64,000 bases of DNA, from assembly GCA_047495785.1 (NCBI GenBank), contig JBLDXI010000007.1, positions 1,798,001-1,862,000 of the forward strand. Direction: 5' to 3'. Positions 3,497-23,709 of this stretch are shown here, piece after piece. Origin of the DNA: Lepidodermella squamata (lineage: Eukaryota > Animalia > Gastrotricha). The position numbers and the translations under genes are program-made. Under the pieces are notes generated by a model. The model ran no database searches and had not been told where the DNA came from. It saw nothing but the letters and a program-made list of their open reading frames with translations. Position 1 is the first letter of the stretch; each line of letters begins with the position of its first letter.

Positions 3497-3892
3497 TGAA
3501 CTCGTCTTTATCTAGCGCATATTATTAATTTCCCATATAACTTTTAATGAGAGCATTCATTAAGAAGTCTGAACCTATTAGGACATCACGGTAATTTGTT
3601 CGTCTTTTTGTGACAAAATCTCGTTTACAGCATGGCTTGTTCGATCATGTGACTTTAATTTTGAAGAATGACGTCTGTTACCCTGCAGTGAAATCAAAAC
3701 TCTGATCTCAATACGATTACGCCACTATGCCAATTATCAAGGATCTCACGTGAGCCGCCAGACGGGGACTTTTTCTAAATAATTAAAATGATTAATTGCG
3801 AAATGCATAAGAAATATCGGCAATTAAGGATGTCCACAGAGACCAATATAAGCCAGAGGAAATTTACCACATGACACAATCCTTTGAAAGTT

Positions 3893-6310: not shown

Positions 6311-6689
6311 AAAAATAGAGTGAGAAAAATAGAGCCAAAACTTATTTTGTACTGTACCTAGTGTGGTCATTTGATTTTATACCGAGCAACTTCTGAGATT
6401 AACCTTTAATAAAATCCGTGCAGTGACGATCAATGTTTGCAGCGGGAAGTTACTTATCCCATTAGAAACTCCGTAATTGGCATCCTAGTACGTGACCGAA
6501 CTTGTGTGAAACACACGAAATCATGCCGAAGACCGAGACATCATTAAGATAGTCAGCGAGATAGCTGTTCGCGTTACCACTAGCCATCAAAGCAAAGGAA
6601 TTTGCGAGAATCACGTTCTAAGCCACGCAGTTCGCATAATGCCCGGAGTTTTCTTAATGTAGGAGTCATTCCTGTTTCTTGCTTTCGAA

Positions 6690-9182
6690 ATGCATCGACT
6701 AACTTTCACACTTGCAATGGTGCTAATAGGCTGCATCAGTATGGCAGCCCGAGCTGAAATAAAATCTCTATCTCTAATGGGTTTAGTCCCCTTCACCGGA
6801 AGTGAGCCACAAGATGGCAAGACCTGTGCGGCCGCTATGCGCTTTGTTGTCGACAATGTCAACCGGAGATCCGATATTCTGCCGAACTACCGCATTCAAC
6901 TGGACTTGCAGGATGAAACTTTAAATTCTAATCTCGCAACGCGGCGATTAATGGACTACGTGCGATCGTTTGAATCTCCCCAGCCGTATCTGCCATCCCC
7001 GGTTACTTTAGGCCCGATTTCAACTATAGGATGCATTCCATACGCAACTGCGTTATCACATTTGAATATGGTCTCTGTAACTTATGGTTGCGGCTCACCC
7101 GTTTTTGGAGCGAACCGAAAAGACTTCCCAAACATCTATAGACTGAATAACCCCGGAGATACTGTTACCGGCTCTTGGCTCTATTATATCAAATACATTC
7201 AAAAGTGGAAAAACGTTGGATTGATAACGAGCACCAGAACCCTGGACTTCCAACTGGCGAAGAACTTTTATGAGGCTAGTCTAGCTAGCGGAGTGTCAAT
7301 ACGTTGGTCTGACTCGTTTGACACAGAGGTCAGCGATGAAATGATGCTGTCTCTGAAGAAAAGTAACGTGCGAGTCATCATGGTTTCTCTTGGCAGATTT
7401 TTCTCAAATGTTGAATTTCTTTGCGCTGCTTATAGATTTGGAATTACAGGAGCCAACTACGTATTCATAACCTATGCTGCCGCTTTCACAGATCCTTATT
7501 CCTTACCCCAAGTTATAAATCAGAAGAAAAATTGCACCCGAGATGTTGTAATCGAGCAAACAAAGTATTCTGTCTTCATCGGCACTTCTTCTGTCGTTTT
7601 GGAAAATCCGACGACGACATCTCTCGGATACACTTTGAACGAGTTCGAAAGGTTGTTTGACAATTATACAAATGGAATTTTCTGGAACAAAGCTGACTTC
7701 TTCAGACGCCATAGTTGTCACGACGTAACCTTACACGCTATTCTGGTTCTTAACAAGACTGAGAGCCTGCTGGCACAGAAAAATATGACGCTTTCTGACT
7801 ATGCTTTAATGCCGAAGCTTGTTGGTTCGATCGCGAACAAAACAGCGGGACTCACCAGCTTCTACGGCCTTCGCAACGGTTACGAGGCGTTTTCTCAACG
7901 GATGGAAATGGATAGCTACCCGAACTTTGTGGCAACTTGGTCAGGAAATGGAAGCGACATGAACTATCACTACAAAATTGTTGCCGGGAGAAATGTTGAC
8001 GTCTTGGAGAACTATTCTGTGAACATCATGAATTCTGAACTAAAATGGTTAACTAAAGATGCACGGGCCCCGAATGATATGGCGAGGAGCGTGCAAATTA
8101 TGGATGACATAACCTTTGAGACAGGTTTGTCCATAACGATAGTTGCAACTCTCATTTCGTTGGCCCAGTTCGCTGCGCTTGTCTACGTCCTAGCGAAAAG
8201 GACGAATCGAGGGATCTTTCGCGGGAAAATTTTGTCGACAGCTGGTGTAATAGTCATAAACATTTCAGCAGCTTGTTTTGCTGTTGGTTTGGTCGATGGA
8301 AATAAGGTCATTAATGGAGACAATTACGCAATATGTCGAGCTAGAATAAGTCTCCTCGTTATAGGAATGGCTCTTGTTCATAGTTCCATGGTGTTCAAGT
8401 TAGTTTTGTATGGCAACGAGCTGCTTGGGAAGATTCGAGCTTTTAAAAAACAGTACAGTAGTGGCAGCCATAGGGGAGATATGACGAATCAGCATCCGCG
8501 AATATTTCATGAAGGTCTGGCTATGGATTCAACAGCGAAATCTTATTTGCGCCAGTTGTACCCAAATTTACTCGCGAAAGCCCACGATAAGCGCACTCTA
8601 CATTCGACATTGGTCATCGTTGTACTGTATGGCATTATTCTTCTTCTCTGGTTTCTGTATGACCCAGTTGAATTTTCATCAGAGATCGTCTCTGAATATT
8701 ACGATGAGGGCGAGGACGCGTTTTTTACAGTGAAAGAAATGGCATGCTCATCGCCTCAGATTGTTGTTTGGTATGCGATTTTATGTGGTAGTCAAGGCAT
8801 TATTCTGCTATGTGGAGCTTTCTTGGCTTATTCTTTGCGATCAGTTTCGTTGATTATGAACTGCTCGCAATATATACCTGAGTTCAATCCGCTTAGGAGA
8901 GCTCAAATGATTGCTGTAACTTTATTTTATGGTACAATTTTGATACTTGTCGGTTTCGCTGGTCATTCAACAACCCAGTATTTGGTATTGTCCTTCGCAC
9001 TGCTTATTTATTCGATTTCAACGTTCTGCTTCATTTTCGCACCGGCACTTCGCTATCGTTCACACGTTACCAGAATTAGGGACGCTCGTGGATCCATCCA
9101 CCTTTCTATACCTCGTTCCAATCAAACGACCAACCTCAGTCGTAGACTATCCGGAAGCTTATCTAATAATCATAATCAATAA
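6690..9182 (+). CDS. Class C GPCR, paralog 3 (intronless)
   Basis: 830-aa ORF with signal peptide; VNRRSDILPNYRI, TSTRTLDFQLA, WFLYDPV, FLAYSLR. Confidence 0.9.
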   Translation: MHRLTFTLAMVLIGCISMAARAEIKSLSLMGLVPFTGSEPQDGKTCAAAMRFVVDNVNRRSDILPNYRIQLDLQDETLNSNLATRRLMDYVRSFESPQPYLPSPVTLGPISTIGCIPYATALSHLNMVSVTYGCGSPVFGANRKDFPNIYRLNNPGDTVTGSWLYYIKYIQKWKNVGLITSTRTLDFQLAKNFYEASLASGVSIRWSDSFDTEVSDEMMLSLKKSNVRVIMVSLGRFFSNVEFLCAAYRFGITGANYVFITYAAAFTDPYSLPQVINQKKNCTRDVVIEQTKYSVFIGTSSVVLENPTTTSLGYTLNEFERLFDNYTNGIFWNKADFFRRHSCHDVTLHAILVLNKTESLLAQKNMTLSDYALMPKLVGSIANKTAGLTSFYGLRNGYEAFSQRMEMDSYPNFVATWSGNGSDMNYHYKIVAGRNVDVLENYSVNIMNSELKWLTKDARAPNDMARSVQIMDDITFETGLSITIVATLISLAQFAALVYVLAKRTNRGIFRGKILSTAGVIVINISAACFAVGLVDGNKVINGDNYAICRARISLLVIGMALVHSSMVFKLVLYGNELLGKIRAFKKQYSSGSHRGDMTNQHPRIFHEGLAMDSTAKSYLRQLYPNLLAKAHDKRTLHSTLVIVVLYGIILLLWFLYDPVEFSSEIVSEYYDEGEDAFFTVKEMACSSPQIVVWYAILCGSQGIILLCGAFLAYSLRSVSLIMNCSQYIPEFNPLRRAQMIAVTLFYGTILILVGFAGHSTTQYLVLSFALLIYSISTFCFIFAPALRYRSHVTRIRDARGSIHLSIPRSNQTTNLSRRLSGSLSNNHNQ

Positions 9183-10138
9183 CACAAGGGCATATAACGC
9201 CGCGGAGGACCTGATAAATAAATGATATTAATACTTTTCTGCATGTTTAAAATGACCAGAAATGTTGTTCAGCCGAGGTTAAGAACGTTATTATTAATGT
9301 TCTAATGCCTGCTGTGCTGCGAATTTCAGTGACCTTTGGTAATCTGACAATTAGGATAATCTGAATTTAAACAGTGAGAGTTAGAGTTTGATTTGAAGGG
9401 CAGACAATTTTTAAAACCAAAAATTATAAAGCAATTTCCTTTCACGTCATTAAAGATTATTAAATTAATGATAACTGCAGGATATCATATTTGCGATGCG
9501 TTATAATACGCTTCCTTGCGATTCGCCAACAAGGATCGTGTGGCCACGGACATTTTGATCTGACATTTTAGTCTTGGAGGGGGTGGATCTGTTTGGCTTC
9601 AGAGTTGCAGTGAGCAACGCTCGGAACCCAAGAAAGGACGTGACTAATGGTGCTTTCACAAATGCGTCGGACGGCGAAAACTTCGGTTAGCAACTCGCAA
9701 ACTTCGGAAAAGTGAAGCGAAACGTCGGACGGTGTTATCAGTGGCAATTCGGACGCGCGCGCGCAGCGAGACGTCCGACGTTCTATTGTTCTTCTCCCGA
9801 AGTTAGCGCGCATACCTCTCAACGAGCGCACGCACTTTTATATAGCGGAAAACGGCCGGGTACAGCAACTTTTTTTTCATTTCGGTCCCAATTAAAAAAA
9901 TGTTTTCAAATAAAGGTAGATGACGTAAAAAGCAACACGAGCATATATAATTTTACTATTATCGCATTTATCAAGCCAAACATGTTGTTCTATAGTAAAA
10001 ATGAAAGCAAATCAAGTCGAAGCACAGTATAAGGATGCAAAATGCGAAAATCAGAAATGAGAAAATGAATTTACATTCATGAGATGTTAATCATTTTAGT
10101 GCGAATATTAAAAATCGACAGAAACCGACTGCTGAAAT

Positions 10139-11546
10139 TTAGAATTTTCGATTCAGCATTTTTGACTGCCAGGCAACCATGCCCGATTCGGACTGGAACC
10201 AGATGGTTAAATTCGAGCGCAACTGCTGGCCGTGGTCGAAACCCTTTTTCTCGGTGACGCGAATATTCTCTGGGACGAAATTCGGAAGCGCGCCTTCTTT
10301 CTCGATCTCCTGCCACGTGTCCCACGCCTCGCGATCGCCGATGTTGTAGTTAGAAACCTCGGCCATTGCGAAATTATGAAGCGTACAGATGGCCAGCACG
10401 GCGTCTTCTGCCATTTCTGGGCTCAACTCCATCACTTTCCGAAGTAGGCGGAATCTAGCTGATGCAATGCCGAATGCGTTTTCGACGACACGCCGACCGC
10501 GAGATAAACGATAATTAAAAGTTTGCTTATTAGCCGGCAAATTTCCGGATGTTTGTCCGGGATAGGGTGAAAGGAAGTTCCAGTCTAGCCCGAACGCCGC
10601 ATCGCCAACAAAATAATGGTTCGCCTTCATATTGCCACCAGGTAGAGGAATAGACTCTGTTGGCGTGGTGTTGCTGCAATATTCCAGCAGGCCGCTATTC
10701 TTGAATACCCCGCCGTCACTGAAACGGCCGTGGGCACCGACATCGACCAGGCAGAAGCGATACTTGGCGTCAACCACCGCCATTAGCACAATCGAGTAAG
10801 TTCCCTAAAAAAATAAAAAAATAAATAAAAAAAAACCAAAAAAATTAAAATTAAAAATTTACAATTTAATTTTGAGAATATTTTTTTAAATAAAATAAAA
10901 TAAAATAAAATAAAATAAAATAAAAAATAAATAAATAAATAAATAAATAAAAATTGCTACCAACCTTATAATTATAATATTCGCTCCCAGATTTTGCCGG
11001 ACGAACGATGACGCAGTGTTTTCCGTCTACCGCGCCGCAGCAGAACGGCAAATTCCAGTACTGGCCAAACTCGGCGGCGTTCTCTCGCCACGTTTCAGCG
11101 GTGGGAGTCGGCATGTAAATTGGCATTAGGGCGGTTGAGATCGCACGCATAGTTCTTTTCAAAATCGAATGAACTGTTGCCACGCCCATTCGAAACGAGT
11201 ATGACAGGCTTGTCATCGACTCTCCAGTTGCTAAAAAACGAACGGTCAGCGCCATTTTTTCTTCGAGCGAGATGCCATGCCGGCCGAATATCGACGGCTT
11301 GGCAGTAATAGGCCGTACCAGTGCGACAAGTTTGTTGAATGCGGCAATATCGAGGCGATAATAATTTTGAAATCGCTCATTATCCATCAGCAGCTCGCGG
11401 TGTAGACAATGGAAATGACCCAGCATTGGCCGTTGCCGATTCACCGGGTGAATGCCATAACGACGCACTTTTTTCTGTGCTCGTTTTCGGCGTAAATGCA
11501 ACGCTAAGCCGATTAGAAGAGCCTTGCGTCTACGGTCGCGAATCAT
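10139..11546 (-). CDS. Harbinger DDE transposase (HARBI1-like), 415 aa; exons 11546-10965 and 10804-10139
   Basis: Motifs GAVDGKH, YNYK|GTYSIVLMAVVDA, GRFSDGG, VGDAAF, RRVVENAFG. A 160-nt T-rich GT-AG intron joins the two ORFs in frame with no stops. Confidence 0.93.
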
Positions 11547-11835
11547 TTCAGGAGAAGAGAAATTAATTAAATTTTCTTAATCAGATTAGTGGCATCCAGG
11601 TGAGCGAGGCGAGGCGAGCATGACGACGAGCGTGGCGGCCGCGCATTGACGCAGCGCCTGCCGCCATCTTGGCGGTGCGCCCTTTGATTTCTCAACATGG
11701 CGTCCGAAAATGCCGCGATTTTGGGTTATTTAAACCAATCCAACATCAGCTAGGGTATCATCGCTCAACTCAAAACTCGCCGAAAACTAGACTTTCACTC
11801 AGCTTTTACTCGAATTTGGCTAGTTTTTCGTTAAA

Positions 11836-12924
11836 ATGAACGACATGCGCTATTATTTTCCGTCGTCGTCGTCGTCGTCGTCTCAGGTGACTTTCGATGA
11901 CAGCCAACCGTACACGATGATGCAACCGTCTCAACACATGTCGTACTCGCAGTTGCCGCCAACACCGGTTCCGCCCAACAATTCTCGCCCGTCCTCGTCG
12001 GCTTCTTCGTCGTCGTCCGCGTCTTCTTCGATTTCGTTCGAGCAGCATCGCTCCGAGGTGCATGCCGCTATTATCGAGTTTGTTCGACACAACCCGTCGC
12101 TTTGGCTGCCGTCAGACGTCAAATACAGCGACGTAGTCTTCAAAAATGCCCTGTGGGCTACTCTGGCCACACGCCTTCCGATGAAGCCCGCGACAGCGTC
12201 AGCCCCGGCACAGCCGTACACCTACAAAGAAGTGAGCGTGGAGTGGCAGCGTCTTCGCGACCGCTTCACTAAATGCCACAAGCAGTACGTGGCGAGCGGC
12301 TCGGCAGCTGAGAAGACTGTCCGTTTCGCCTTCTACGAGGCGATGACCTTTCTGGCGGACGTAGTGATGTACAAAAACAAGTGAGTTATTTTATTTATTT
12401 TTTTTTAAATGAAAAATGTGCGGAAAATCGGAAACAAATTGCTTAAATTTTTCATATTTTTCAGAACGAAGTCGAATTTACCTGTTTCTTCGGCGTTACC
12501 TGCGTCAGTTGCCCGGCAACTTCGCCCCGACACGCCTCACACGCCTCAAACGCCTCAAACGCCTCAAGTCAATGCTACTGGCGATTCTTCCGGCGACGCT
12601 GGTCAGTTGAACCCTCCGCCCGTCTTAGCCGGCGTTCAAGACTCGCAGTCGAACTTCATCGAACAGTCGACACCGTCAGCAGCAGCGGCAAGCAGTGGTC
12701 GGAAGAAGCGGAAGGCGGAAGAATCTGAAGAACTTGACCCACTTACCCGGGCGATAATCGCCTCGCTCGAGGGCGAGCCGCTCTTTACAGAGCGCCGTCG
12801 CGCTATTAATGAACAATTTGCGTCGATTTTAAATATTATTGATGAATCACCTCTCAGCAAAAGCGAAATATCGCGCTTGTTTTTCGATATTAGTGATTTA
12901 GTCCGTCGCACGGTGTTCAACTAA
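11836..12924 (+). CDS. Harbinger MADF (Myb/SANT-like) DNA-binding protein, 334 aa; exons 11836-12380 and 12465-12924
   Basis: IIEFVRHNPSLW...KNALW...EWQRLRDRF...FAFYEAMTFL is a MADF pattern; GTGAGT...TTTTCAG intron is in frame; NLS-like RKKRK. Confidence 0.88.
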
Positions 12925-13885
12925 TTGTAAATTGTTTTGTAATTTTTTGTTGAATTTTTGTCTTAAATTGTTGAAATGTGTTGTAGTATATGGTGTTGTA
13001 ATTTCCGCTGTTGTTGAGCCCAATAAAACTTTTCCGCTCTTCGTTAGATTCTTTTGTTTAAACTCTTCGGTTCGGACGCACTTCGGACGGTAGTTTTGCG
13101 GGTCTCCGATCCGACGTTCATTGTTTTGCGTGCGCGCGCTGCGTCGGACGCGCTTTTGTTCAAACTTCGGGCGCGCAGGCCGAAGTGCGCGCGTTTGTGA
13201 AAGAAAATCTGAACGTCGGGCAACTATTACGCTACTTCGGTCGCCTATTACGAAACTTCGGGCGCCGAAAACGTCGGACGCTCGTCGGACGCATTTGTGA
13301 AAGCACCATAATCCAGATGGAAGCTCCTAGTCATAAACTTAATGATCATTTAGGATTCCCTAGCCCTTACGCTTCTGCAGCAGCTTGCTGTTGCTGCATA
13401 AAAGATTCAAAGATGTTAGATCCCTATACATAGCAGAACCTGCCAGCGTTTGCTTGTACAATTATTATGGGACATCACCTGAGGTTAGCTTGGCACTAGG
13501 AGTAACTTTGGCACTGGTTGGCTTCAATTCGAGATCTTCCAGCATTACTGAAAATCACTTGTCACAGAACGAGTACTCAGGATTGTCTCAAGGATTGTCT
13601 CAAGTTCGAGGGTTCTGGTGAATATCCTGTCAGTTTCAAGTTCACACATCTGCTAGAAAAGGAGAACATTTTGCCCCAGCAAAGCACATACTGTCGTGAC
13701 TTTGACATAAGGAATGAGGATACCGAAACCCTCAAGTAATTGCTAGTGGGTTGTTTAGCGAATATATGGCTAATTTCGGCAGCAGAACTCTATATGCCCC
13801 GGTGCACGTTGCGGAAAAGATTACACCCACGGCATCGGCATAAAAGGCTGCTTGTACGGGATAATTTTTGTCATATTTCCAAACA

Positions 13886-16225
13886 ATGCTGACATTTTAT
13901 ATAATTTTTTTCTTTACCATGGATGGCCTCAACGCGGAGAAAACAAAAACCCTTTCTGTGATGGCCTTGATGAGTTTCACTGGCATGGAACCTCAGGACT
14001 GCCGGCCATGTGTCGCTGCGATGCAACTCGCTGCGCATCAAATCAATCGCAGGAATGACATCCTCCCTAACTATCAAGTTGTGTTCGACTTTCAAGACGA
14101 AGCCGCTAATTCGAATTTAGCCACGCGCAGACTTTTGGAATATGCCCGTTCGTTTGAAGATAAGCAGGCGTATTGCCAGTCCCCGGTAACAGTTGGCCCG
14201 ACCTCAACAATAGGTTGCATCTCATACGCTTCGGTCCTGTCCCACCTCAATATGGTTTCTATCACTGCTGGATGCGCCTCGCCAGTTTTAGGGGCAAATA
14301 GGAAAACCTACCCAAACATCTATAGAATGACGAACTCCGGGGATGTCACCGTAAGTTCGTGGTTGTACTTCGTTAAATACGTACAAAAATGGAAGAACAT
14401 TGGCTTGATTACATCAACGCGAACGTTAGATTTCCAACTTGCAAATAACTTTTACGCAGCCAGTCAATCCAACAATGTGACCATCAAGTGGTTCGACTCG
14501 TTTGATACTGAAGTCAGTGATGACATGATGAATTCACTGAAGAAGAGTAACGTCAGGGTAATCGTTGTCTCCTTAGGACGATCGTTCAGCAATGTAGAAT
14601 TCCTCTGTGCCGCGTACAGATTTGGGATATCAGGACCAAACTACGTTTATGTGACATACTCCGCGGCCTATATCAATCCTATGTCCCTTCCAAAAGTCAT
14701 AAATCAAAGAAGGAACTGCACCCGTGATGTAATTATTGAACAAATGAAGAATTCAGTCTTTATTGGCACCTCACCCGTTCAGCTGGATAACCCAACACCC
14801 AACAGTCTGGGAGAAAATGTTTCTCAATTTGACGAAACGTATGACAATTTCACCAAGAGCTCTTTCCGAAATTTTTCCGACTATTCTCGGCGCTATTCAT
14901 ACTACGACATAGCTATTCACTCGATTCTCGTGTTACATAATACTGAGATTCTGCTGAAAAAGATGAACATGACTCTGACCGACTACGCTGCTGAGCCGGA
15001 AATGGTTGGTTTAGTTGCCAATCAAAGCGCTGGCCTCACGACCTCCTTCGGGCTCCGAAATGGTTTGGAAGCATTTTCAGCTCGACTTGAGATGGATAGT
15101 TACCCGAATTACCTCTTCACCTGGTCACCAAGGGGTATCAAATTCCATTACAAGATTGTAGCGGGGAAAAATGTGGCCGCATTGGAAGATTTTACAGCTT
15201 TCGTAATGGGGAGTCCGATTAAATGGTCTACAAAAGATGCTACGGCTCCGAATGACATGGCTAAATTTGTTCAAATTCAACGCGATATCGACCCTAGGGC
15301 AAGTCTTGCCATTATAATCCTCATTTCAGGGATTTCGCTGGTCCAATCGGCTTCGATCGTCCGTCTCCTTTACTCTGCGAAGCTAATGAGTAATATCCTG
15401 GGGAAGGTAGTATTAGCAGCAGGGTTTTTATTCATAAATGCATCTGCGGCTTGTTTTGCCGTCGGTTTTGTCGATACTACAAATATAACAAGCCAAAGCA
15501 ATGCTGTAATTTGTCATGCTAGATTACTACTTTTAGTAATCGGCGTTTCTCTGGTTCATGGCGCAATCTTCACGAAATTATTCCTTCACGGCCAAATACT
15601 TTTGACTTTTTTGAGTGGGTTCAAAGGAACACGGGGAGGCGGTGACAGTAGAAATGTAGTGTTTAATGATGCCCTCGAACGAACAGATTCGAAAATGAAC
15701 AACCTTCAGAAGCTTTACCCATCCTTCCTAATTAAACAGCAAGAAAGGCGTAGCATATTGATAACTCTACTGATGACGCTCGTCAATATCAGTGTGGCTA
15801 TCGCCTGGTTTATTCATGACCCTCTCATATTCTATTCGGACGTAATTTCCAGGTATTATGACGAAGAAAACGATACCTTCTTCAGTGTGATAGAAACCGC
15901 TTGCTCGTCACCTGGAGAAATTGGATGGTATGCTGGTCTTGCTGGAAGTCACGGCTTACTCTTGCTGTCTGGAGCTTTTGTGGCTTTCTCTTTGCGAACA
16001 GCTTCCTTGATGTTCGAATGCTCATCGGTCATTCCTGAATTGAATCCTCTGCGTAGAGCAATTTTGGTGGCGGTAACGTCATATTTTGGAACTATGTTGG
16101 TTCTTGTTGGTTTTAACGGTCATCCCACGTGGCAGTATTTGGTAATATCCATCGCACTTCTTTGCCATTCCTCGGCAACATTCTGTTTCATTTTCATTCC
16201 ACCGCTGAAACAGATCCTGTACTAA
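13886..16225 (+). CDS. Class C GPCR, paralog 4 (intronless; closest to paralog 3)
   Basis: INRRNDILPNYQV, TSTRTLDFQLA, WFIHDPL, PELNPLRRA; seven TM helices. Confidence 0.9.
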   Translation: MLTFYIIFFFTMDGLNAEKTKTLSVMALMSFTGMEPQDCRPCVAAMQLAAHQINRRNDILPNYQVVFDFQDEAANSNLATRRLLEYARSFEDKQAYCQSPVTVGPTSTIGCISYASVLSHLNMVSITAGCASPVLGANRKTYPNIYRMTNSGDVTVSSWLYFVKYVQKWKNIGLITSTRTLDFQLANNFYAASQSNNVTIKWFDSFDTEVSDDMMNSLKKSNVRVIVVSLGRSFSNVEFLCAAYRFGISGPNYVYVTYSAAYINPMSLPKVINQRRNCTRDVIIEQMKNSVFIGTSPVQLDNPTPNSLGENVSQFDETYDNFTKSSFRNFSDYSRRYSYYDIAIHSILVLHNTEILLKKMNMTLTDYAAEPEMVGLVANQSAGLTTSFGLRNGLEAFSARLEMDSYPNYLFTWSPRGIKFHYKIVAGKNVAALEDFTAFVMGSPIKWSTKDATAPNDMAKFVQIQRDIDPRASLAIIILISGISLVQSASIVRLLYSAKLMSNILGKVVLAAGFLFINASAACFAVGFVDTTNITSQSNAVICHARLLLLVIGVSLVHGAIFTKLFLHGQILLTFLSGFKGTRGGGDSRNVVFNDALERTDSKMNNLQKLYPSFLIKQQERRSILITLLMTLVNISVAIAWFIHDPLIFYSDVISRYYDEENDTFFSVIETACSSPGEIGWYAGLAGSHGLLLLSGAFVAFSLRTASLMFECSSVIPELNPLRRAILVAVTSYFGTMLVLVGFNGHPTWQYLVISIALLCHSSATFCFIFIPPLKQILY

Positions 16226-16885
16226 CGAGTAGATCGCCCCGAGAACGCGAATAATTAGTCGGTTACATTTCAAATTACCTGTCGGTAACGCAGTCCGCAA
16301 TATTTGGTGCGATATAGCCCGATATTCATTAGCTCATAGTTAGACATAAGCATGTGTTAAACTGTAGGATAGGTAAATCGTAGTATCAATGTACGCTGTC
16401 AATTGTACGCTGTCAGTTGTCACGAGCTGTCCTGGCATTTTTGCGAAAACCCGTACATATTCGTTAGGCAATGCGCACTGAAATAAAACACTGCATGACG
16501 ATCACGGACTCTTACTTTATTCGTAATTGGAGACAAAACTGAAGTTTTTATGAGGCGATGGGTTATATAGCGATTACGTTACCATGGTTTAGAGGTTGGA
16601 GAGTTGAGAAGATTTGTGTAAGATCCACACTCATTTGGAAATTTATCACTTATTTGAGTTCGAAACAACGGGAGTCGTGAGAAAAAATTCAGGGAAAGAA
16701 GAAATTTAAGGCGAAACGGATCGTCAATGGAATGCCAACGGAGGTGTAGCATATGCTTACCCTCGAAACTGAGATGAATGCATTAACATGTTGCCGGAAG
16801 CCGTTAAGCGAACACGTAAATACGTGCTGCCACTAACAGAGTCAATGCCCCTCGTATTTCCGACACTTTGATTAATCTTCGTAGG

Positions 16886-19279
16886 ATGAATATCATCATT
16901 CTGATTCTCACCATATCTGCTCTGTCACCGATTCCAGGTCAGGCTCGAAAGAACAAGACGTTATCTGTCTTAGCTCTAGTCGGCTTCACCGGTAATGAAC
17001 CTCAGGATGGAAAAGCTTGTGCCGCTGCTATGGAATTCGTTGTTAAAGTTGCTAATTCAAGGAAAGATATATTGCCAAACTATCACCTGGTTCTTGACAT
17101 ACAAGATGAAACCATGAACTCAAATCTAGCAACTAGTCGCTTGATAAACTACATTCGATGGTTTGAAAACAGCGAAAACAAGACAATCTCTCAGTCTCCG
17201 ATAACCATCGGTCCGAGTTCATCGGCTAGTTGCCTGCCGTACGCCGCGACTTTGGCCCCATTGAATATGGTAGCTGTAACAGCCGGGTGTGCTTCGCCAA
17301 TCTTCACTGCGAATCGAGCAGCTGCCCCCAACTTGTATCGCCAACAAATTCCAGGGGAAATCGTTCATAACTCATGGATTTACTTTATCAAGCACGTGAT
17401 GGGTTGGAGAAGCGTTGGACTTCTAACCTCAACTCGATCCCTTGACTTTCAGTTGGCAAAAAGTTTCTACGAAGGTACTTTTAAGCACAAACTGGCTATT
17501 CGCTGGTCAGATGCTTTCGAAAACGATGTCCCCGATGAAATGATGATATCTTTGAGAAGAAGCAACGCTCGCATTATCATGGTCGTGCTAGCGCGTTGGT
17601 TTTCTATCACCGAGTTCTACTGCGCAGCATTCAACTTTGGGGTGACTGGATCTAAGTATGTTTTTGTCACCTATCTCGGAACGTTCACTGACCCTGCCAT
17701 GTTACCGTCATTCACCAATCCGAAGAAGAACTGCACCAGAAACATAATATTGGAGCAAATGAAGTATTCAGTTTTCATCGGCGGCCAATCCGTTTTGTTA
17801 GAAAACAATGGGAATACCTCCCTAGGTTACGACAGAGACGGGTTCGAGCAACTCTACGCCAAATTCACTAACGATATGTACCCAAATAGTCCCGACTTTC
17901 CGCGAAGGCTGCCCTGCCATGATGTGGTAATGCAAGCCACGATGGCCTTACATCAGACTGAAATGAACCTAGCCTCGAGGAATATGACGCTATCTGACTA
18001 CGCCGACCAACCAAATCTTGTGAGCCGAATCGCGAACCAAAGCACCGCAGAACTTGAGTTCCGCGATCTTCGGGTTGGATACGAGAAATATTCCGAACGA
18101 CTCGAAATGGATGGCTACCCCACATTGGTTATAACTTGGTCTCATTTGACGAGTGCACTGGTTCTGAATGGGAAAATAAATGCAGGCGAGCCGGCTAATC
18201 TCTCGATGTATTCCTTTTCGAGTATTACCCAGATCGAGTGGCCCGGTCAGAAAGTCCCGTCGGATATGCCTCGATTCACAAGGATTGCTAAAGATGTGAC
18301 TGACGACCTTTCAATCTCAGTTTACGTCATTTCCGCTCTCTCGGCTTTCGGTCACATTTCGAGACTTTTTTATTTGGTTAGAAAATATTTTACACAACAG
18401 ATTCTACGGCGCAGTCAAATCGTCCTTTTGCTCGCTTGTTTACTAATGGATGGAGGAGCAACAACATTCGCAATCGGTCTTGTCAGCCTAACAGATCTCA
18501 GCAATCCTCTGAATTTACGGTTGTGCTACGTCAAAATCATCTTTACTGTCGTAGGCTTAGCCCTCGCTCACGGCTCTGTCTGCACCAGATTATGGTTGTA
18601 TTTCAAAGTTTATCTATCAAATCGCTCGTATCTGTTTCAGCGTGAAGTATTCACGCCAGCGACGAGTGACATTTTTGTCATTAACAGTGCGGAGGTGCAA
18701 CGGCAGAAATCAATTAGGCTGAAAAAGATGTACCCCGAGCAAATTCAAACTCTTCAAGACAAGAGAAGTTCACAAAGTGCACTCTTATTCACATTCGCAA
18801 ACATCGCGTTTCTGACGATATGGTTCTTAAGCGACCCACTCAAATTACATTTTCGCAACGTTTCCAGCTTTTATGACAGTGATAAAGACCTGTTTGTGGC
18901 CGTTGTAGAAGGTTCATGTAGTTCTGATGCCTTTTCCGCATGGCTGGGGACTTTAGTCGCCGTCCACCTGATTATGCTTGTCATCGGATCCGTGATAGCT
19001 TTTTCCCTTAAGGCAATTTCCGGCATCAAAAAAGTCGATGTTTTGATACCTGAGATGAATCCGATGCGGAGAGTGCAGTTCAACTTTTTAACATTATTCG
19101 CCGCTGCTGTTTTGCTTCTGTTCGGATTCGACAACCATCCTTCGGCGCAGAATGGGACAATAAGCATCACTCTGATGTTGAATTCAGTACTCACATCCAT
19201 TATTTTAGCGGCACCATCGTTAGGGAAAAAAGTCGGCTTTGTGCAGCTAAAATCGCGCACAGCTAGCAATGCTGCATGA
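16886..19279 (+). CDS. Class C GPCR, paralog 5 (intronless)
   Basis: Signal MNIIILILTISAL; ANSRKDILPNYHL, WFLSDPL, PEMNPMRR. Confidence 0.9.
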   Translation: MNIIILILTISALSPIPGQARKNKTLSVLALVGFTGNEPQDGKACAAAMEFVVKVANSRKDILPNYHLVLDIQDETMNSNLATSRLINYIRWFENSENKTISQSPITIGPSSSASCLPYAATLAPLNMVAVTAGCASPIFTANRAAAPNLYRQQIPGEIVHNSWIYFIKHVMGWRSVGLLTSTRSLDFQLAKSFYEGTFKHKLAIRWSDAFENDVPDEMMISLRRSNARIIMVVLARWFSITEFYCAAFNFGVTGSKYVFVTYLGTFTDPAMLPSFTNPKKNCTRNIILEQMKYSVFIGGQSVLLENNGNTSLGYDRDGFEQLYAKFTNDMYPNSPDFPRRLPCHDVVMQATMALHQTEMNLASRNMTLSDYADQPNLVSRIANQSTAELEFRDLRVGYEKYSERLEMDGYPTLVITWSHLTSALVLNGKINAGEPANLSMYSFSSITQIEWPGQKVPSDMPRFTRIAKDVTDDLSISVYVISALSAFGHISRLFYLVRKYFTQQILRRSQIVLLLACLLMDGGATTFAIGLVSLTDLSNPLNLRLCYVKIIFTVVGLALAHGSVCTRLWLYFKVYLSNRSYLFQREVFTPATSDIFVINSAEVQRQKSIRLKKMYPEQIQTLQDKRSSQSALLFTFANIAFLTIWFLSDPLKLHFRNVSSFYDSDKDLFVAVVEGSCSSDAFSAWLGTLVAVHLIMLVIGSVIAFSLKAISGIKKVDVLIPEMNPMRRVQFNFLTLFAAAVLLLFGFDNHPSAQNGTISITLMLNSVLTSIILAAPSLGKKVGFVQLKSRTASNAA

Positions 19280-19356
19280 AAATGGGCGGAAATAGACTCA
19301 TAAATGAACATTTTGAAGTCTGATTCATCAAGGATTCATCTAATAAATTCAGCGTG

Positions 19357-20210
19357 CATAGAGCCCTAGGGGAAGCTTACATAATTCACATAATTCACAT
19401 AATTCGAAAATTTAAGGTGCATTTTTTAATTTCTGAAACTTGCGCCGAAGGCGCCAAAAAACCTTGCCCCGCCGTGAAACGCGAGCGCAGCGAGCATCAC
19501 GGGGCAAGGTTTTTGGCCGAGCTGAGCGAGGCTCTACGAGCGTAGCGAGTCCCTCCGAGAGTAGCGAGATTTCCCTATCATGACTGATTGAGCGAAGCGA
19601 ATTTCCTGTGCTCCCGAGCTCAGCGAGGAATCAACCAAATTTTCATGAAGATACTAACGGAACTATTTCTTTCATTCATTTATATTACTTCGATATTAAT
19701 ACTGATCGATTCGATAAACAGCCGAAAATCAAGCTGAAAATGGTTCAGGGTTCACTCAATAAGGATACAACTTTGGTTATTTAGTCAGGATACCGACGTT
19801 ACCGGGACGCCCTGCTGTTAGAGCAAGGAGGCTCGGTGGCTTTCAAATACTAGTTCTATGAAAGACCATCATTGGCCGTAGATTGCTTGCGTTCTATTTG
19901 ATAGGAGCTTACTGCGCCGTTGTGAAAGCAGGAAGAAGGGAGAATAAGAATAAGACCAAGAATAAGAATAGCAACAAATTTAAACGCTTTTTTAAGCTGC
20001 ATTTTTTATTCTTCAAAATTTTTCGTTTTTAGTCATTTACTATGTGACAATTTTACCAGTTTTTACCCGGTTTCACCAGTTTAGTTGATAGCTTCCCCAC
20101 GGGCACTATGTCTAATAAAGCCCACGGTACGGCTAGTTTCTCGGAAAAATCGCTTCGCCTCGTCTTATTATGTGAGTTTTCCTCGAAACTGGCCTCCCCT
20201 AGGGCTTTAT
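19357..20210. mobile_element. Candidate non-autonomous element with nested imperfect inverted repeats and GC hairpins
   Basis: CATAGAGCCCTAGGGGAAGCT (19357-19377) has imperfect inverted copies at 20090-20110 and 20191-20210. Hairpin GCCAAAAAACCTTGCCCCG...CGGGGCAAGGTTTTTGGC at about 19453-19517. No TSD seen. Confidence 0.5.
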
Positions 20211-20601
20211 TTATACATAAACACTTTTTCTTCTTCTCATTTGCTTGTCTTAACCAGGTACCTGTGGCTATGTTTTCAAAAAATGGTATCAGTAGACAGT
20301 TATTTCAGCCAGAGATTAAACAGCTGAACGTCGTGTCGTTTACAGACTCAAGCCACACCGATTAATATGAGCCTAAACAAACTCTGTGAAGCGAATAAAC
20401 CGAGATTGCAGCGCTATTTTGAGCATTAACCTTTGGGAGCAAACAATGACAGACGTCGTTTTATCAACCCACCCACGTATGTTCTAAGAATGTTCGAGAA
20501 CAATAAACCTTCTGACACCCCATAAGAACAGTCAAAACAATAGCATTATATCACTCACCTAATTTTCACTGTCCTGAATTAAAGTATTCAATCGCTCTGA
20601 C

Positions 20602-21600
20602 ATGTCTGGAAACAACGAAAAGCAACGCTGCAAGAACGGTTGCCAAGACGGGCAATGCAAATGTCCCGAAGGCTCTTGCTGCAAAGGAAACGCTAACCAC
20701 GAATGCGGCAAATGTAACTGCAAGCCTGGCGAATGCAAATGCCCAGCTAATTCGTGCTGCAGAACTGATTGCTGCAAAAACTGCAAGCCAGGTGACTGCA
20801 AGTGCAAACACGAATCTGGTTGCCATAACGATTGCTGCAAAGACTGCCCGCCCGGCGAATGCAAGTGCCCACCTGAATCCTGCTGCAAGAAGGGTAAATG
20901 TGGAAAGTGCAACTGCCCACCTGGTGAATGTAAATGCTCCGGAAATTCATGCTGCAAGAAGGACTGTTGCAAAGGTTGCCCACCCGGTGAATGCAAATGT
21001 CCGGCTGATTCGTGCTGCAAGAAAGAAGGCCATAGCAAGTGTGGAAAATGCAACTGCCCGCCTGGCGAATGTAAATGCTCCAAGGGTTCGTGTTGCAAAG
21101 CTGATTGTTGCAAGGATTGCCCACCTGGTGAATGTAAATGCCCGCCCGAGTCGTGCTGCAAGAATGGAGGCAAATGCGGTAAATGCAACTGCCCCGCTGG
21201 TCAATGCAAGTGTCCTGGAAAATCCTGCTGCAAGAAAGAAGGCCATGGCAAGTGTGAAAAATGCAACTGCCCGCCTGGCGAATGTAAATGCTCCAAGGGG
21301 TCGTGCTGCAAGAAGGACTGTTGCAAAGACTGCCCACCAGGGGAGTGCAAGTGCCCGGCTGATTCTTGTTGCAAGAAGCAAGGAACTGGTAAATGTGGCA
21401 AGTGCTCTTGTGCCCCTGGTGAATGTAAGTGTTCCGATGGTTCGTGTTGCAAGAAGCAGTGCTGTGACGGCTGCTCTCCTGACACCTGCAAATGTCCCGA
21501 TGGGCCTTGTTGCAAAAAAGATGCCAGTGGAAAGTGTACTTCCTGCAACTGTAAGCCAGGCGAATGCAAATGCCCGGGCGGTTCTTGCTGCAAGAAATAA
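20602..21600 (+). CDS. Very long modular metallothionein-like protein (332 aa, 14 Cys modules)
   Basis: Intronless ORF; about 96 Cys by hand count (~29%) in CxC, CC and CxxC motifs; Lys/Gly/Pro-rich; no F, W or Y; no signal peptide; AATAAA near 21724. Confidence 0.82.
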   Translation: MSGNNEKQRCKNGCQDGQCKCPEGSCCKGNANHECGKCNCKPGECKCPANSCCRTDCCKNCKPGDCKCKHESGCHNDCCKDCPPGECKCPPESCCKKGKCGKCNCPPGECKCSGNSCCKKDCCKGCPPGECKCPADSCCKKEGHSKCGKCNCPPGECKCSKGSCCKADCCKDCPPGECKCPPESCCKNGGKCGKCNCPAGQCKCPGKSCCKKEGHGKCEKCNCPPGECKCSKGSCCKKDCCKDCPPGECKCPADSCCKKQGTGKCGKCSCAPGECKCSDGSCCKKQCCDGCSPDTCKCPDGPCCKKDASGKCTSCNCKPGECKCPGGSCCKK

Positions 21601-22164
21601 GCTGGAAGGCTTGGACGTCGAATGAACTCTGAAATCACCCCAATCACAACGGATCATATAAAATCGTAACTACTTGTGGCAAAGCCACTGATGATTTTTT
21701 TGTGATTTACTAATATGATTTTGAATAAATTCCTGCATGCACATATCTTCGATTTTCCGTATGGTCGTATAGTAACCTGCCAAAAACTGTGCACAGAAAA
21801 AAAGAGCCGCGATATTAGCACAACGAAATAGATCCGAACGAAATATCATGAAATTATCATGAAATCGAATTAAAGAAATTAAAACTGATAGAATCGGGAC
21901 TCCAAAATGACGTCCTGTGACGTAAAATGGATTTCTTACTGTTCGAAAGCCTGACTTTGAACGGTTTTTTCTAGCTCAAACACAATCCCAAACCGTATAT
22001 GACCCTTTGCAGGCATCAATATCGACTTCACTATATTTCGACATCCACGGCCGCTGAGTCCCTCTTAAATTTCCCTAATTTGCTAAAATTCAGTGAAACT
22101 TGGGCTCGAATAACAATTGCTGTTGGGTTTTTAAGACACATTCTAGGTTGTTTTAGGTTGAATT

Positions 22165-22573
22165 CATAGAGAAAAAATGACCAGAGAAAGCACTCAAGCT
22201 AAAATTTCTAAATCCTCATTTTAAATCAAAGTTGACTTTCTCAAAACGGATATCTCCGTTTTCTACCAAATTTTGCATGCCTATAGAACGCGAGCTGCTC
22301 TTTCACGTGGTATAAGATTTGAGGTGGGCAACCCAACCGTTGTTAAGATACAAAAACCTCGTTTTCACTATGGTTTTACTTATTTTGATGATATCAAGAC
22401 TGAGCAGCAATTGCCCACCTCAAATCTTATACCACGTGAAAGAGCAGCTCGCGTTCTATAGGCATGCAAAATTTGGTAGAAAACGGAGATATCCATTTTG
22501 AGAACGCACTTCTGCAATAATGGAGATCAGTATTTTAGCTTGAGTGCTTACTCTGGTCATTTTTTTCTCTATG
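22165..22573. mobile_element. Foldback MITE (409 bp) with 8-bp TSD (P or hAT superfamily)
   Basis: Ends CATAGAG...CTCTATG; near-perfect inner arms about 22240-22331 and 22411-22503; GTTGAATT duplicated at 22157-22164 and 22574-22581. Confidence 0.85.
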
Positions 22574-22730
22574 GTTGAATTATACGACATGTCTGATGAA
22601 AAAAGTCTCACCCGGTTTAAAATTATTAGAACATAGCGCAGAGGAACCAGATGTGCAGTTGCGCACGCGCTCACAATGTGGCAAAAAACTGTGCTTCTTT
22701 TATTCATTCATAAAGTTGTTGCATCATGAT

Positions 22731-23709
22731 CATAGACATAATTTAGGATAGACTGCTTACTCACGAGAAAAAGGGTGCTACGCCATGGGCGCCAGATGGT
22801 CAGCTGATTCATCAGCGCTTGGAGGAAAAGTAAACAAAATATTCGATTCTTTTTTTACTGGTTCCGTGACGGTGTCGATTTTCCCAAAGGTTTGGTTGAT
22901 GGATCCAGACAGAGGAAATTACGAGGAACACGTTGGTTATTTTTTCGAAATTTTTAAAGGAATTTCAACTGGTGTTATCGACGAAAAATGGTTTCGCAGT
23001 TACAAATAAAAATAATTTTCAGGATCATTTAAATTGAAATTGAAGCTGTTTTTTAATGGTCCAGGTAGCCCACATCGTGGTCCACATGTCGATGCTTGGA
23101 GCGAACTTCGATGATTTTTCCCTGAATTTCCAGGAATTTTAGAGACGAAATCTCAACCTCCAGCTATACAAAAACTGGAGGTTTCGAGTTGGAATCTTTG
23201 TTGACAGCACGTGCGCCACACCCACATGGCGTAGCTGGAAAAAGATTGTAGTTGGGCTTTTCTTTAAATATAATGCCAATTCCGCTTGGTGATATTTTGA
23301 TAATTCCTAGAAAATCAGTAAAAAATCATCGAAGTTCGCTCCAAGCATCGACATGTGGACCACGATGTGGGCTACCTGGACCATTAAAAAACAGCTTCAA
23401 TTTCAATTTAAATGATCCTGAAAATTATTTTTATTTGTAACTGCGAAACCATTTTTCGTCGATAACACCAGTTGAAATTCCTTTAAAAATTTCGAAAAAA
23501 TAACCAACGTGTTCCTCGTAATTTCCTCTGTCTGGATCCATCAACCAAACCTTTGGGAAAATCGACACCGTCACGGAACCAGTAAAAAAAGAATCGAATA
23601 TTTTGTTTACTTTTCCTCCATGCGCTGATGAATCAGCTGACCATCTGGCGCCCATGGCGTAGCACCCTTTTTCTCGTGAGTAAGCAGTCTATCCTAAATT
23701 ATGTCTATG
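22731..23709. mobile_element. Foldback element (979 bp) with ~390-bp near-identical TIRs
   Basis: Ends CATAGACATAA...TTATGTCTATG; the arms give the mirror ORFs 22785+ and 23655-; flanks ATCATGAT and ATCATGAG (7 of 8 match). Confidence 0.88.

Follow-up and report, generated by a model that had tools for sequence, protein, structure and literature searches.

The gene and its transcript

At 20602-21600 of the window (the whole stretch of Lepidodermella squamata DNA that was analyzed, 64 kb long), the list of open reading frames contains an ATG-to-TAA coding sequence of 332 codons on the forward strand. It lies among genes of animal type, namely a tandem family-C receptor array, a cytochrome P450, and an ankyrin-KH (ANKHD1/mask-like) gene. 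The nematode markers TTR-52 and SL1 were looked for and are absent. The main features of the locus are given below, where C32 is the contig that carries a second version of the gene and X1 to X4 are public sequencing runs.

19342..20215, no strand: 874-bp stretch upstream of the promoter, present in the window haplotype and absent in C32 and X4
20217..20552, +: proximal promoter region, conserved between haplotypes (C7/C32 alignment)
20553..20601, +: 5' UTR of 49 nt, transcript 5' end at 20553 (run X1 contig with SMART oligo)
20602..21600, +: coding sequence; 332 aa, 96 Cys, 34.4 kDa, predicted pI 8.5; TAA at 21598-21600
20626..20628, +: codon 9, CGC (Arg) in the window and TGT (Cys) in C32; Arg form in the cDNA contigs
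20791..20793, +: codon 64, GGT (Gly) in the window and TGT (Cys) in C32 and X4 (20791 G>T in X4)
21030..21031, +: approximate insertion point of the extra C32 sequence, ambiguous within the repeat (protein alignment and module lists)
21601..21741, +: 3' UTR of 141 nt, AATAAA at 21724-21729, poly(A) site at ~21741 (run X2 contig)

Contigs from the four public runs were aligned to positions 18800-23000 of the window. Runs X1, X2, and X3, which come from two studies, are cDNA-type, and run X4 is DNA. The summed depth of the X1-X3 contigs reaches ~150-1400 and is confined to 20553-21741; it is zero over 19646-20491 and 21761-22042 and amounts to 2-22 over the upstream neighboring receptor gene (contigs rank expression imprecisely, but the contrast between the gene and its flanks is nevertheless large). 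With their coverage limited to the gene in this way, the three runs therefore behave as cDNA.

Both ends of the transcript can be placed. One X1 contig reproduces 20553-21018 without differences and is preceded by GTATCAACGCAGAGTACATGGGG, which corresponds to the 3' portion of the SMART template-switch oligo, thus marking 20553 as the 5' end of a full-length transcript. One X2 contig spans 21299-21741 and continues with 21 A that are absent from the genome; since the genomic sequence at the addition site (~21741) reads ATATCTTCG, this A run is a true tail. Not a single splice joint was seen in the X1-X3 contigs inside 20553-21741, and the gene is intronless. The 49-nt 5' UTR has no ATG, so that 20602 is the first AUG of the mRNA, in the context GACATGT. 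In short, 20602-21600 is a real gene that gives rise to an abundant, unspliced mRNA of ~1.19 kb.

Protein composition and module architecture

The encoded protein is extreme in its composition, with 96 Cys (28.9%), 61 Lys (18%), 42 Gly, 32 Pro, and 5 His among its 332 residues, whereas F, I, L, V, W, and Y are all missing. Since hydrophobic residues are lacking, a conventional core cannot form. AlphaFold2, run without metal, yields no fold (mean pLDDT 42.6, pTM 0.21), and the protein is thus predicted to be disordered on its own; such a low-confidence model fits apo-metallothioneins but is no evidence by itself. The cysteines are clustered in short motifs, namely 21 CxC, 19 CC, and 13 CxxC, and are frequently flanked by lysine (36 CK and 26 KC).

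The N-terminus (MSGNNEKQ...) is hydrophilic, and the maximum Kyte-Doolittle(15) mean of the whole protein is only -0.09. Hydropathy gives no signal peptide or membrane segment in the 332 residues, and the mRNA has no upstream exon that could supply one. The topology is thus that of a cytosolic protein, which should stay in the reducing cytosol; this predicted location argues against both the secreted disulfide-knotted repeat families and a prohormone-type polyprotein that is cut at KK.

Cutting the sequence after each C[KQ]C-x4-5-C[CH] divides it into 14 modules, which follow one another as B A B B A B A B A A B A B A. The A module, Cx2[CxC]x4[CxC]x4CC (typically CGKCNCPPGECKCSKGSCC), occurs in seven copies with 7 Cys each and is preceded by a linker of 3-7 residues, e.g., KKEGHSK. 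The B module, CCx2Cx4[CxC]x4CC (typically CCKDCPPGECKCPADSCC), is found in six copies after the first unit, which is itself B-like but has 6 Cys, residue 9 being Arg. Module 3 (residues 54-75, B type) also has 6 Cys, with Gly at residue 64, and the other modules (12 of 14) have 7. Most modules are separated by KK, and two of the linkers contain His (KKEGHSK at residues 140-146 and KKEGHGK at residues 211-217). An earlier note on this DNA had counted seven A units, six B units (one with 6 Cys), and a 6-Cys first unit, and had pointed out KKEGHSK-type His linkers and a lack of aromatic residues; our module list agrees with it on all of these points. The modules and the youngest duplicate among them are positioned as follows.

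20602-20682, +: module 1, B' type, 6 Cys
20683-20760, +: module 2, A type
20761-20826, +: module 3, B type, 6 Cys
20827-20886, +: module 4, B type
20887-20955, +: module 5, A type, 7 Cys
20956-21018, +: module 6, B type, 7 Cys
21019-21096, +: module 7, A type, 7 Cys
21097-21159, +: module 8, B type, 7 Cys
21160-21231, +: module 9, A type, 7 Cys
21232-21309, +: module 10, A type, 7 Cys
21310-21372, +: module 11, B type, 7 Cys
21373-21450, +: module 12, A type, 7 Cys
21451-21513, +: module 13, B type, 7 Cys
21514-21591, +: module 14, A type, 7 Cys
21592-21597, +: C-terminal KK after module 14
21013..21098, +: youngest duplicate, first member (module 7 and edges), 82/86 identical to the second
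21226..21311, +: youngest duplicate, second member (module 10 and edges), 82/86 identical to the first

At the DNA level, the A+B pair appears as a 141-bp period over 20899-21171 (Tandem Repeats Finder). The two members of the youngest internal duplicate lie at an offset of 213 and are 95% identical. The earlier note had seen this likeness between ~21016-21090 and ~21228-21302; it is borne out (72/75 bases over the first stretch), with the coordinates of the second stretch off by 1-2 bases. Between the modules, synonymous sites have reached saturation but the Cys scaffold is retained, in line with the silent differences between repeats that had been described before.

Alleles, reading frame, and searches for relatives

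The genome (121 Mb in 151 contigs) contains a second copy of the gene on contig C32. The C32 region is collinear with the entire 64-kb window at 91-97% identity, so that the two regions represent either a pair of haplotypes or duplicates of very recent origin. On C32 (L002:1498-2637, minus strand), the gene codes for 379 aa with 112 Cys, arranged in 16 modules of exactly 7 Cys each, its extra A+B pair (47 aa, 141 bp) being placed after residue 143. The runs separate the two versions: at the diagnostic sites, DNA run X4 shows the C32 type exclusively (other depth equal to total depth), and it has a joint 19341>20216 whose bridging letters match C32, i.e., the C32-type absence of 19342-20215; the bases in cDNA runs X1-X3 are all of the window type. 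Each version is therefore found in samples without the other, and X4 settles that they are alleles. The comparison of module number that the earlier note had proposed thus gives 14 versus 16 modules in different samples.

The array has grown in 141-bp modular steps, and its alleles differ in module number. The unit of gain or loss is an in-register A+B pair, as expected from unequal exchange between 141-bp repeats, and this process would explain how the array grew, still changes, and came to exist in 14- and 16-module versions. The period, the 95%-identical copies, and the extra pair in C32 together uphold the idea of a continuing internal duplication and elongation.

As several frames are open across the repeat (it is overlapped by a further five ORFs, 148-277 aa long), the coding frame needed testing, for which the two alleles were compared. 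Outside the indel, their coding sequences differ at 32 bases, of which 26 are third codon positions, and 22 of the 29 changed codons are synonymous. By the Nei-Gojobori method, dS is 0.151 and dN is 0.009, giving an omega of 0.057. Both the third-position bias and this low ratio identify the frame of 20602-21600 as coding and under strong purifying selection.

Upstream homology between C7 and C32 begins at ~20217. The 336 bp preceding the transcript start are ~96% identical between the haplotypes, and the last 134 bp (from 20419) are identical. There is no metal response element (MRE, TGCRCNC) from 19490 to 21342, i.e., to ~1 kb upstream of the start; the nearest such elements are >1 kb away in the upstream direction, within or next to the 874 bp specific to the window haplotype.

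A third copy is found at a distance of 560 kb on C7, the contig of the window (C7:1256721-1256999; L004:1507-1791, minus strand). It is short (94 aa) and degenerate, keeping the N-terminus and two modules before it decays into Tyr-, Leu-, and Ile-containing sequence. On contig C25, the genome has a weak match that was dismissed as due to chance.

Searches beyond this genome were largely empty. Neither allele, nor the di-module, nor the short copy matches a Pfam family at E up to 10; a sequence search of the PDB and a phmmer search against 1.84 billion representative proteins gave 0 matches each. The word-indexed collection held no match for a 91-aa A-B-A-B piece or for a di-module profile. Two scans of metagenome contigs yielded no confirmed match (the first used uninformative N-terminal patterns), the ESM Atlas no usable match, and the PF00131 profile nothing in the genome. 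It should be kept in mind that HMMER and BLAST down-weight biased composition and may hide Cys-rich matches, and that the protein collections do not include this genome's own proteins, so the absence of relatives is weaker than it appears. As far as Pfam, PDB, HMMER, and word searches reach, there is no known metallothionein family or other relative, which suits the earlier suggestion of a new family.

The only word-search match of the full protein was P0001 (database E 7.5e-5, pairwise BLASTP E 9e-15), in which CPxGECKC heptads make up a Cys-rich N-terminus that is joined to a rhodanese domain. P0001 sits on a 1.1-kb contig of bacterial appearance, between a divergent cytidylate kinase fragment and a second rhodanese, which has a lipoprotein-like leader. 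When 185,579 prokaryotic genomes were scanned for exact CPPGECKC, seven places emerged. At four of them, the protein has additional Cys or Cys/His motifs close by; these are two small planctomycete proteins (L026 and L027, 18% Cys), L029, and L030. The remaining three, all short open stretches, may match by chance. P0001, L026, and L027 share with our protein an identical CPPGECKC and neighboring CxC. On the other hand, the bacterial proteins are built of short heptad-type repeats instead of A and B modules of 21-26 residues, they carry a fused enzyme or a lipoprotein-like leader, and the likeness does not extend beyond low-complexity motifs. We read the likeness as the recurrence of a short metal-ligand motif rather than as descent. 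P0001 is accordingly not taken as kin, its likeness being at motif level and of low complexity only. Horizontal transfer from bacteria or fungi, an idea prompted by CPPGECKC/CPPGxCxC and the intronless gene, is not adopted either, because only an 8-residue low-complexity motif is shared.

Proposed function and known counterparts

Metallothioneins typically contain ~15-30% Cys, few or no aromatic residues, few His, and Cys in CxC, CC, and CxxC arrangements. The protein follows this description with its 28.9% Cys (112 of 379 residues in C32), its lack of F, W, and Y, its 5 His, and its motif arrangement; it departs from the classical mass of <10 kDa with its 34.4 kDa. Multi-modular metallothioneins of at least 25 kDa are, on the other hand, accepted members (PMC4755600, PMC11645667). 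We consider that the gene probably encodes a lineage-specific multi-modular metallothionein. This reading draws on the high expression, the composition and motifs, the lack of a signal peptide, the lack of a fold without metal, the constraint, the fixed Cys spacing, a core that resembles that of fungal metallothioneins, the recurrence of CPPGECKC in small bacterial Cys/His-rich proteins, and the allelic variation in repeat number. Counted against it are the lack of an MRE (an element frequent though not universal in metallothionein promoters) within ~1 kb, the lack of a match to any metallothionein family, and the size of 34 kDa. The window allele also tolerates the loss of two Cys (R9 and G64), and the combination of an intronless gene, Cys-rich repeats, and size polymorphism is equally typical of keratin-associated proteins.

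As a metallothionein, the cytosolic 332-residue polypeptide would acquire a fold only by enclosing metal ions, with a metal-thiolate cluster wrapped by every 7-Cys module or by every 14-Cys A+B pair. In classical metallothioneins, Lys next to Cys balances the cluster charge, and the many CK and KC pairs may likewise offset a negative charge here. Capacity would increase with the number of modules, a relation that experiments on OdiMT and AbiMT constructs have demonstrated. Taking Cd3Cys9 as the model, ~30-37 divalent ions could be bound (~32 by the window version and ~37 by the C32 version); taking Cu5 per 7-Cys block, it would be ~70 and ~80 Cu(I), respectively. The fungal-like core hints at copper, although metal preference is not readable from the sequence.

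The serious rival among the alternatives is a cytosolic, disulfide-forming matrix protein or cross-linker, a counterpart of keratin-associated proteins or of the sperm mitochondrial cysteine-rich protein. Mammalian keratin-associated proteins are cytosolic cross-linkers that are Cys-rich, repeat-built, and size-polymorphic, and their genes are intronless. The same traits are seen here, where a very abundant, cytosolic, Cys/Pro-rich product with a polymorphic repeat number stems from an intronless gene. A possible site would be an intracellular skeletal layer of the epidermis as in rotifer-like animals, the rotifer integument having an intracytoplasmic lamina that is said to be disulfide cross-linked. 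The details fit less well. High-sulfur and ultra-high-sulfur keratin-associated proteins are made of CCxPx pentapeptides and have few Lys as well as some aromatic and aliphatic residues, whereas this protein lacks the CC[QRVE]P pentapeptide, is rich in Lys (18%) as well as in CxC, CK, and KC motifs, and hits none of the keratin-matrix families in Pfam. Moreover, its modules have 7 Cys at fixed spacing under an omega of 0.057, and such a precise Cys geometry is expected of metal clusters and not of random cross-linking. The earlier note had named a disulfide cross-linked structural protein as the outcome that would overturn a metallothionein; that outcome is weakened by the motifs, the Lys content, the spacing, and the constraint, and we hold a cross-linker to be unlikely. 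Its most specific form, in which the protein is not a metal store but an independently arisen keratin-associated-protein analogue of a rotifer-like animal, cross-linking an intracellular skeletal layer with module-number alleles tuning stiffness, seems somewhat more doubtful.

A cytosolic thiol redox buffer or radical scavenger (e.g., in stress or desiccation tolerance), for which metal binding would be incidental, is an unlikely account as well. The 96 thiols, the high and constitutive-looking expression, and a promoter without MRE would all suit it. Free thiols this dense, however, bind Zn or Cu in cells, so that a redox role would not displace metallothionein function but overlap with it, and the strict Cys spacing argues for defined clusters. 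A precursor cut at KK into ~14 small Cys-rich peptides is very improbable: KK does separate most modules, but there is neither a signal peptide nor an upstream exon, and the ATG follows the start of the mRNA by 49 nt; dibasic processing takes place in the secretory pathway, which such a product would not be expected to reach. Finally, a non-coding tandem repeat that is open by chance, as the five overlapping frames might suggest, can practically be dismissed in view of the polyadenylated, capped-type cDNA in which the first AUG opens the frame, the 26 of 32 allelic differences at third positions, and the omega of 0.057.

For the metallothionein reading, the closest known system in logic is, judging from the sequences, the 7-Cys copper-thionein block of fungi, represented by N. 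crassa, CnMT, and TmMT. Cryptococcus neoformans CnMT1 and CnMT2 and Tremella mesenterica TmMT share with our protein the tandem amplification of 7-Cys blocks, a CxC-PPGx-CxC core, the lack of aromatic residues, and a very high predicted capacity (PMC4755600). TmMT is a proven constitutive metallothionein; the predicted capacity of the fungal proteins is Cu5 per 7-Cys block, and TmMT binds 40-45 Cu(I) (PMC4755600). The fungal pattern is [CxC]x3-5[CxC]x3-4[CxC]x2C (PMC4755600), whereas the A and B modules both end in CC. The A module has the central CxC-PPGx-CxC but C-x2 at its beginning and CC at its end, and neither [CxC]x5[CxC]x3[CxC]x2C nor the Tremella block CXCX3CSCPPGXCXCAXCP (PMC4755600) matches, the first and last Cys motifs being different. 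In addition, the host is an animal here, the Cys number is 96-112 versus 57, and homology was not detected; the common core of the A module and the fungal copper thioneins may represent convergence.

In architecture and population behavior, OdiMT2 and the AbiMT proteins are closest. OdiMT2 of Oikopleura dioica is likewise an animal multi-modular protein with a repeated two-part unit, t-12C (7 Cys) plus 12C, and is proven to bind Cd and Zn (PMC8283569, PMC8476144). It has three to seven units depending on the population, and differences between populations or alleles always comprise whole pairs (PMC8283569). Its unit contains 19 Cys versus 14 per A+B pair, its gene has introns (PMC8283569, PMC8476144), and its pattern Cx3Cx2Cx2Cx3Cx2[CxC]x2Cx4[CxC]xCC (PMC8476144) does not match our modules. 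10d-AbiMT4 of Alinda biplicata (>300 aa, ~90 Cys) is also built from small tandem domains; it binds 30 Cd, capacity is proportional to domain number, and 9d-AbiMT3 is its probable allele minus one domain (PMC11645667). These proteins are made of 9-Cys mollusc beta domains (Cd3Cys9) and belong to the mollusc family, in contrast to the two alternating 7-Cys types without family match described here. More broadly, the A and B patterns differ from the ascidian, thaliacean, appendicularian 12C, vertebrate alpha/beta, cephalochordate 11C/9C, mollusc, echinoderm, and insect domains (PMC8476144, table 1).

Where does this leave the 14-module gene? Metallothioneins arose many times, and each independent origin shows which sequences can wrap metal-thiolate clusters. 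If it is one of them, it would be among the most cysteine-laden animal examples, with 96-112 thiols, and a natural candidate for metal capture. None of these findings overturns current views. The earlier note had called the protein giant, a word to be used with restraint, since OdiMT2, with six or seven t-12C/12C repeats, and 10d-AbiMT4 are of similar size or larger; size alone is thus not unprecedented, and it is the module types and the lineage that are new. The 14- and 16-module versions would be the third case, after Oikopleura and the land snail, of within-species variation in repeat number. Large modular metallothioneins with allele-varying repeat number are already known, whereas two alternating 7-Cys modules are undescribed in animals.

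Neighbours of the metallothionein-like gene

The surroundings of the metallothionein-like gene in the window hold the following features:

1133-19279, all on one strand: five tandem family-C (GABA-B-like) receptor genes with an ANF_receptor ligand-binding domain
19342-20215: an 874-bp stretch that follows the last receptor gene and precedes the promoter of the metallothionein-like gene
22184-23655: highly repeated DNA, recognized by its depth in X4, a public DNA run
22785-23009 (+) and 23431-23655 (-): a pair of near-identical 74-aa ORFs in inverted orientation
55450-63634: a gene for an ankyrin-repeat and KH-domain protein (ANKHD1/mask-like), in four long open stretches

The receptor genes encode ~760-830 aa each and are apparently intronless; the last of the array is expressed at a low level in the cDNA runs. 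Its stop lies at 19279, and low cDNA depth extends to ~19645. In a cDNA contig from run X1, 23 T directly precede position 19250; they would mark where a minus-strand transcript, overlapping the 3' end of this receptor gene, is polyadenylated. At the other side of the window, the gaps between the four open stretches of the ANKHD1/mask-like gene measure 11-235 bases, thus indicating that the Lepidodermella squamata genome pairs very long exons with tiny introns.

Haplotype-specific and repeated DNA

The 874-bp stretch is found in the window haplotype and is missing from both the second haplotype (contig C32) and run X4. It contains the only matches to the metal response element consensus TGCRCNC near the metallothionein-like gene (at 19352 and 19483). 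Since parts of it reach very high depth in X4, the stretch looks like an inserted repeat. Downstream of the gene, X4 depth rises to ~19,000 within 22184-23655, versus ~50 for unique sequence, and the runs show several opposite-strand and skip joints there. This region, with its inverted ORF pair, probably represents a transposon whose long ends are inverted.

A paralogue in the same genome and bacterial-type proteins with similar motifs

A short copy of the metallothionein-like gene, and bacterial-type sequences that resemble its product at the level of motifs, were found at these sites:

G000:C7:1256721-1256999 (L004:1507-1791, minus strand of L004): short, degenerate paralogue on contig C7, the contig that also contains the window
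L005 (NCBI GCA_004196315.1, SDBT01794285.1), 248-886: bacterial-looking Cys-rich/rhodanese fusion gene
L026:4509-4532 and L027:5579-5602: CPPGECKC sites in small proteins from planctomycete MAGs

The short paralogue, 560 kb from the metallothionein-like gene, yields a product of 94 aa with 21 Cys, which shares the MSGN-EKQ N-terminus and keeps two intact modules, followed by a degenerate tail with Tyr, Leu, and Ile. The matching stretch is interrupted by a TAA, through which the match continues. Probably, it is a pseudogene or a truncated derivative of the metallothionein-like gene.

The L005 product joins a ~90-residue N-terminal Cys-rich domain of CPxGECKC heptads to a rhodanese domain, and next to it lies another rhodanese, this one preceded by a lipoprotein-like leader; the product is an unusual metallothionein-like/sulfurtransferase fusion. 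The planctomycete proteins (~128 aa, 18% Cys) have a leader peptide and a His-rich stretch, with CPPGECKC followed by DHSHKHQH, making them candidate bacterial periplasmic metal-binding proteins. Their core motif, CPPGECKC, is the one also found in the animal metallothionein-like protein.
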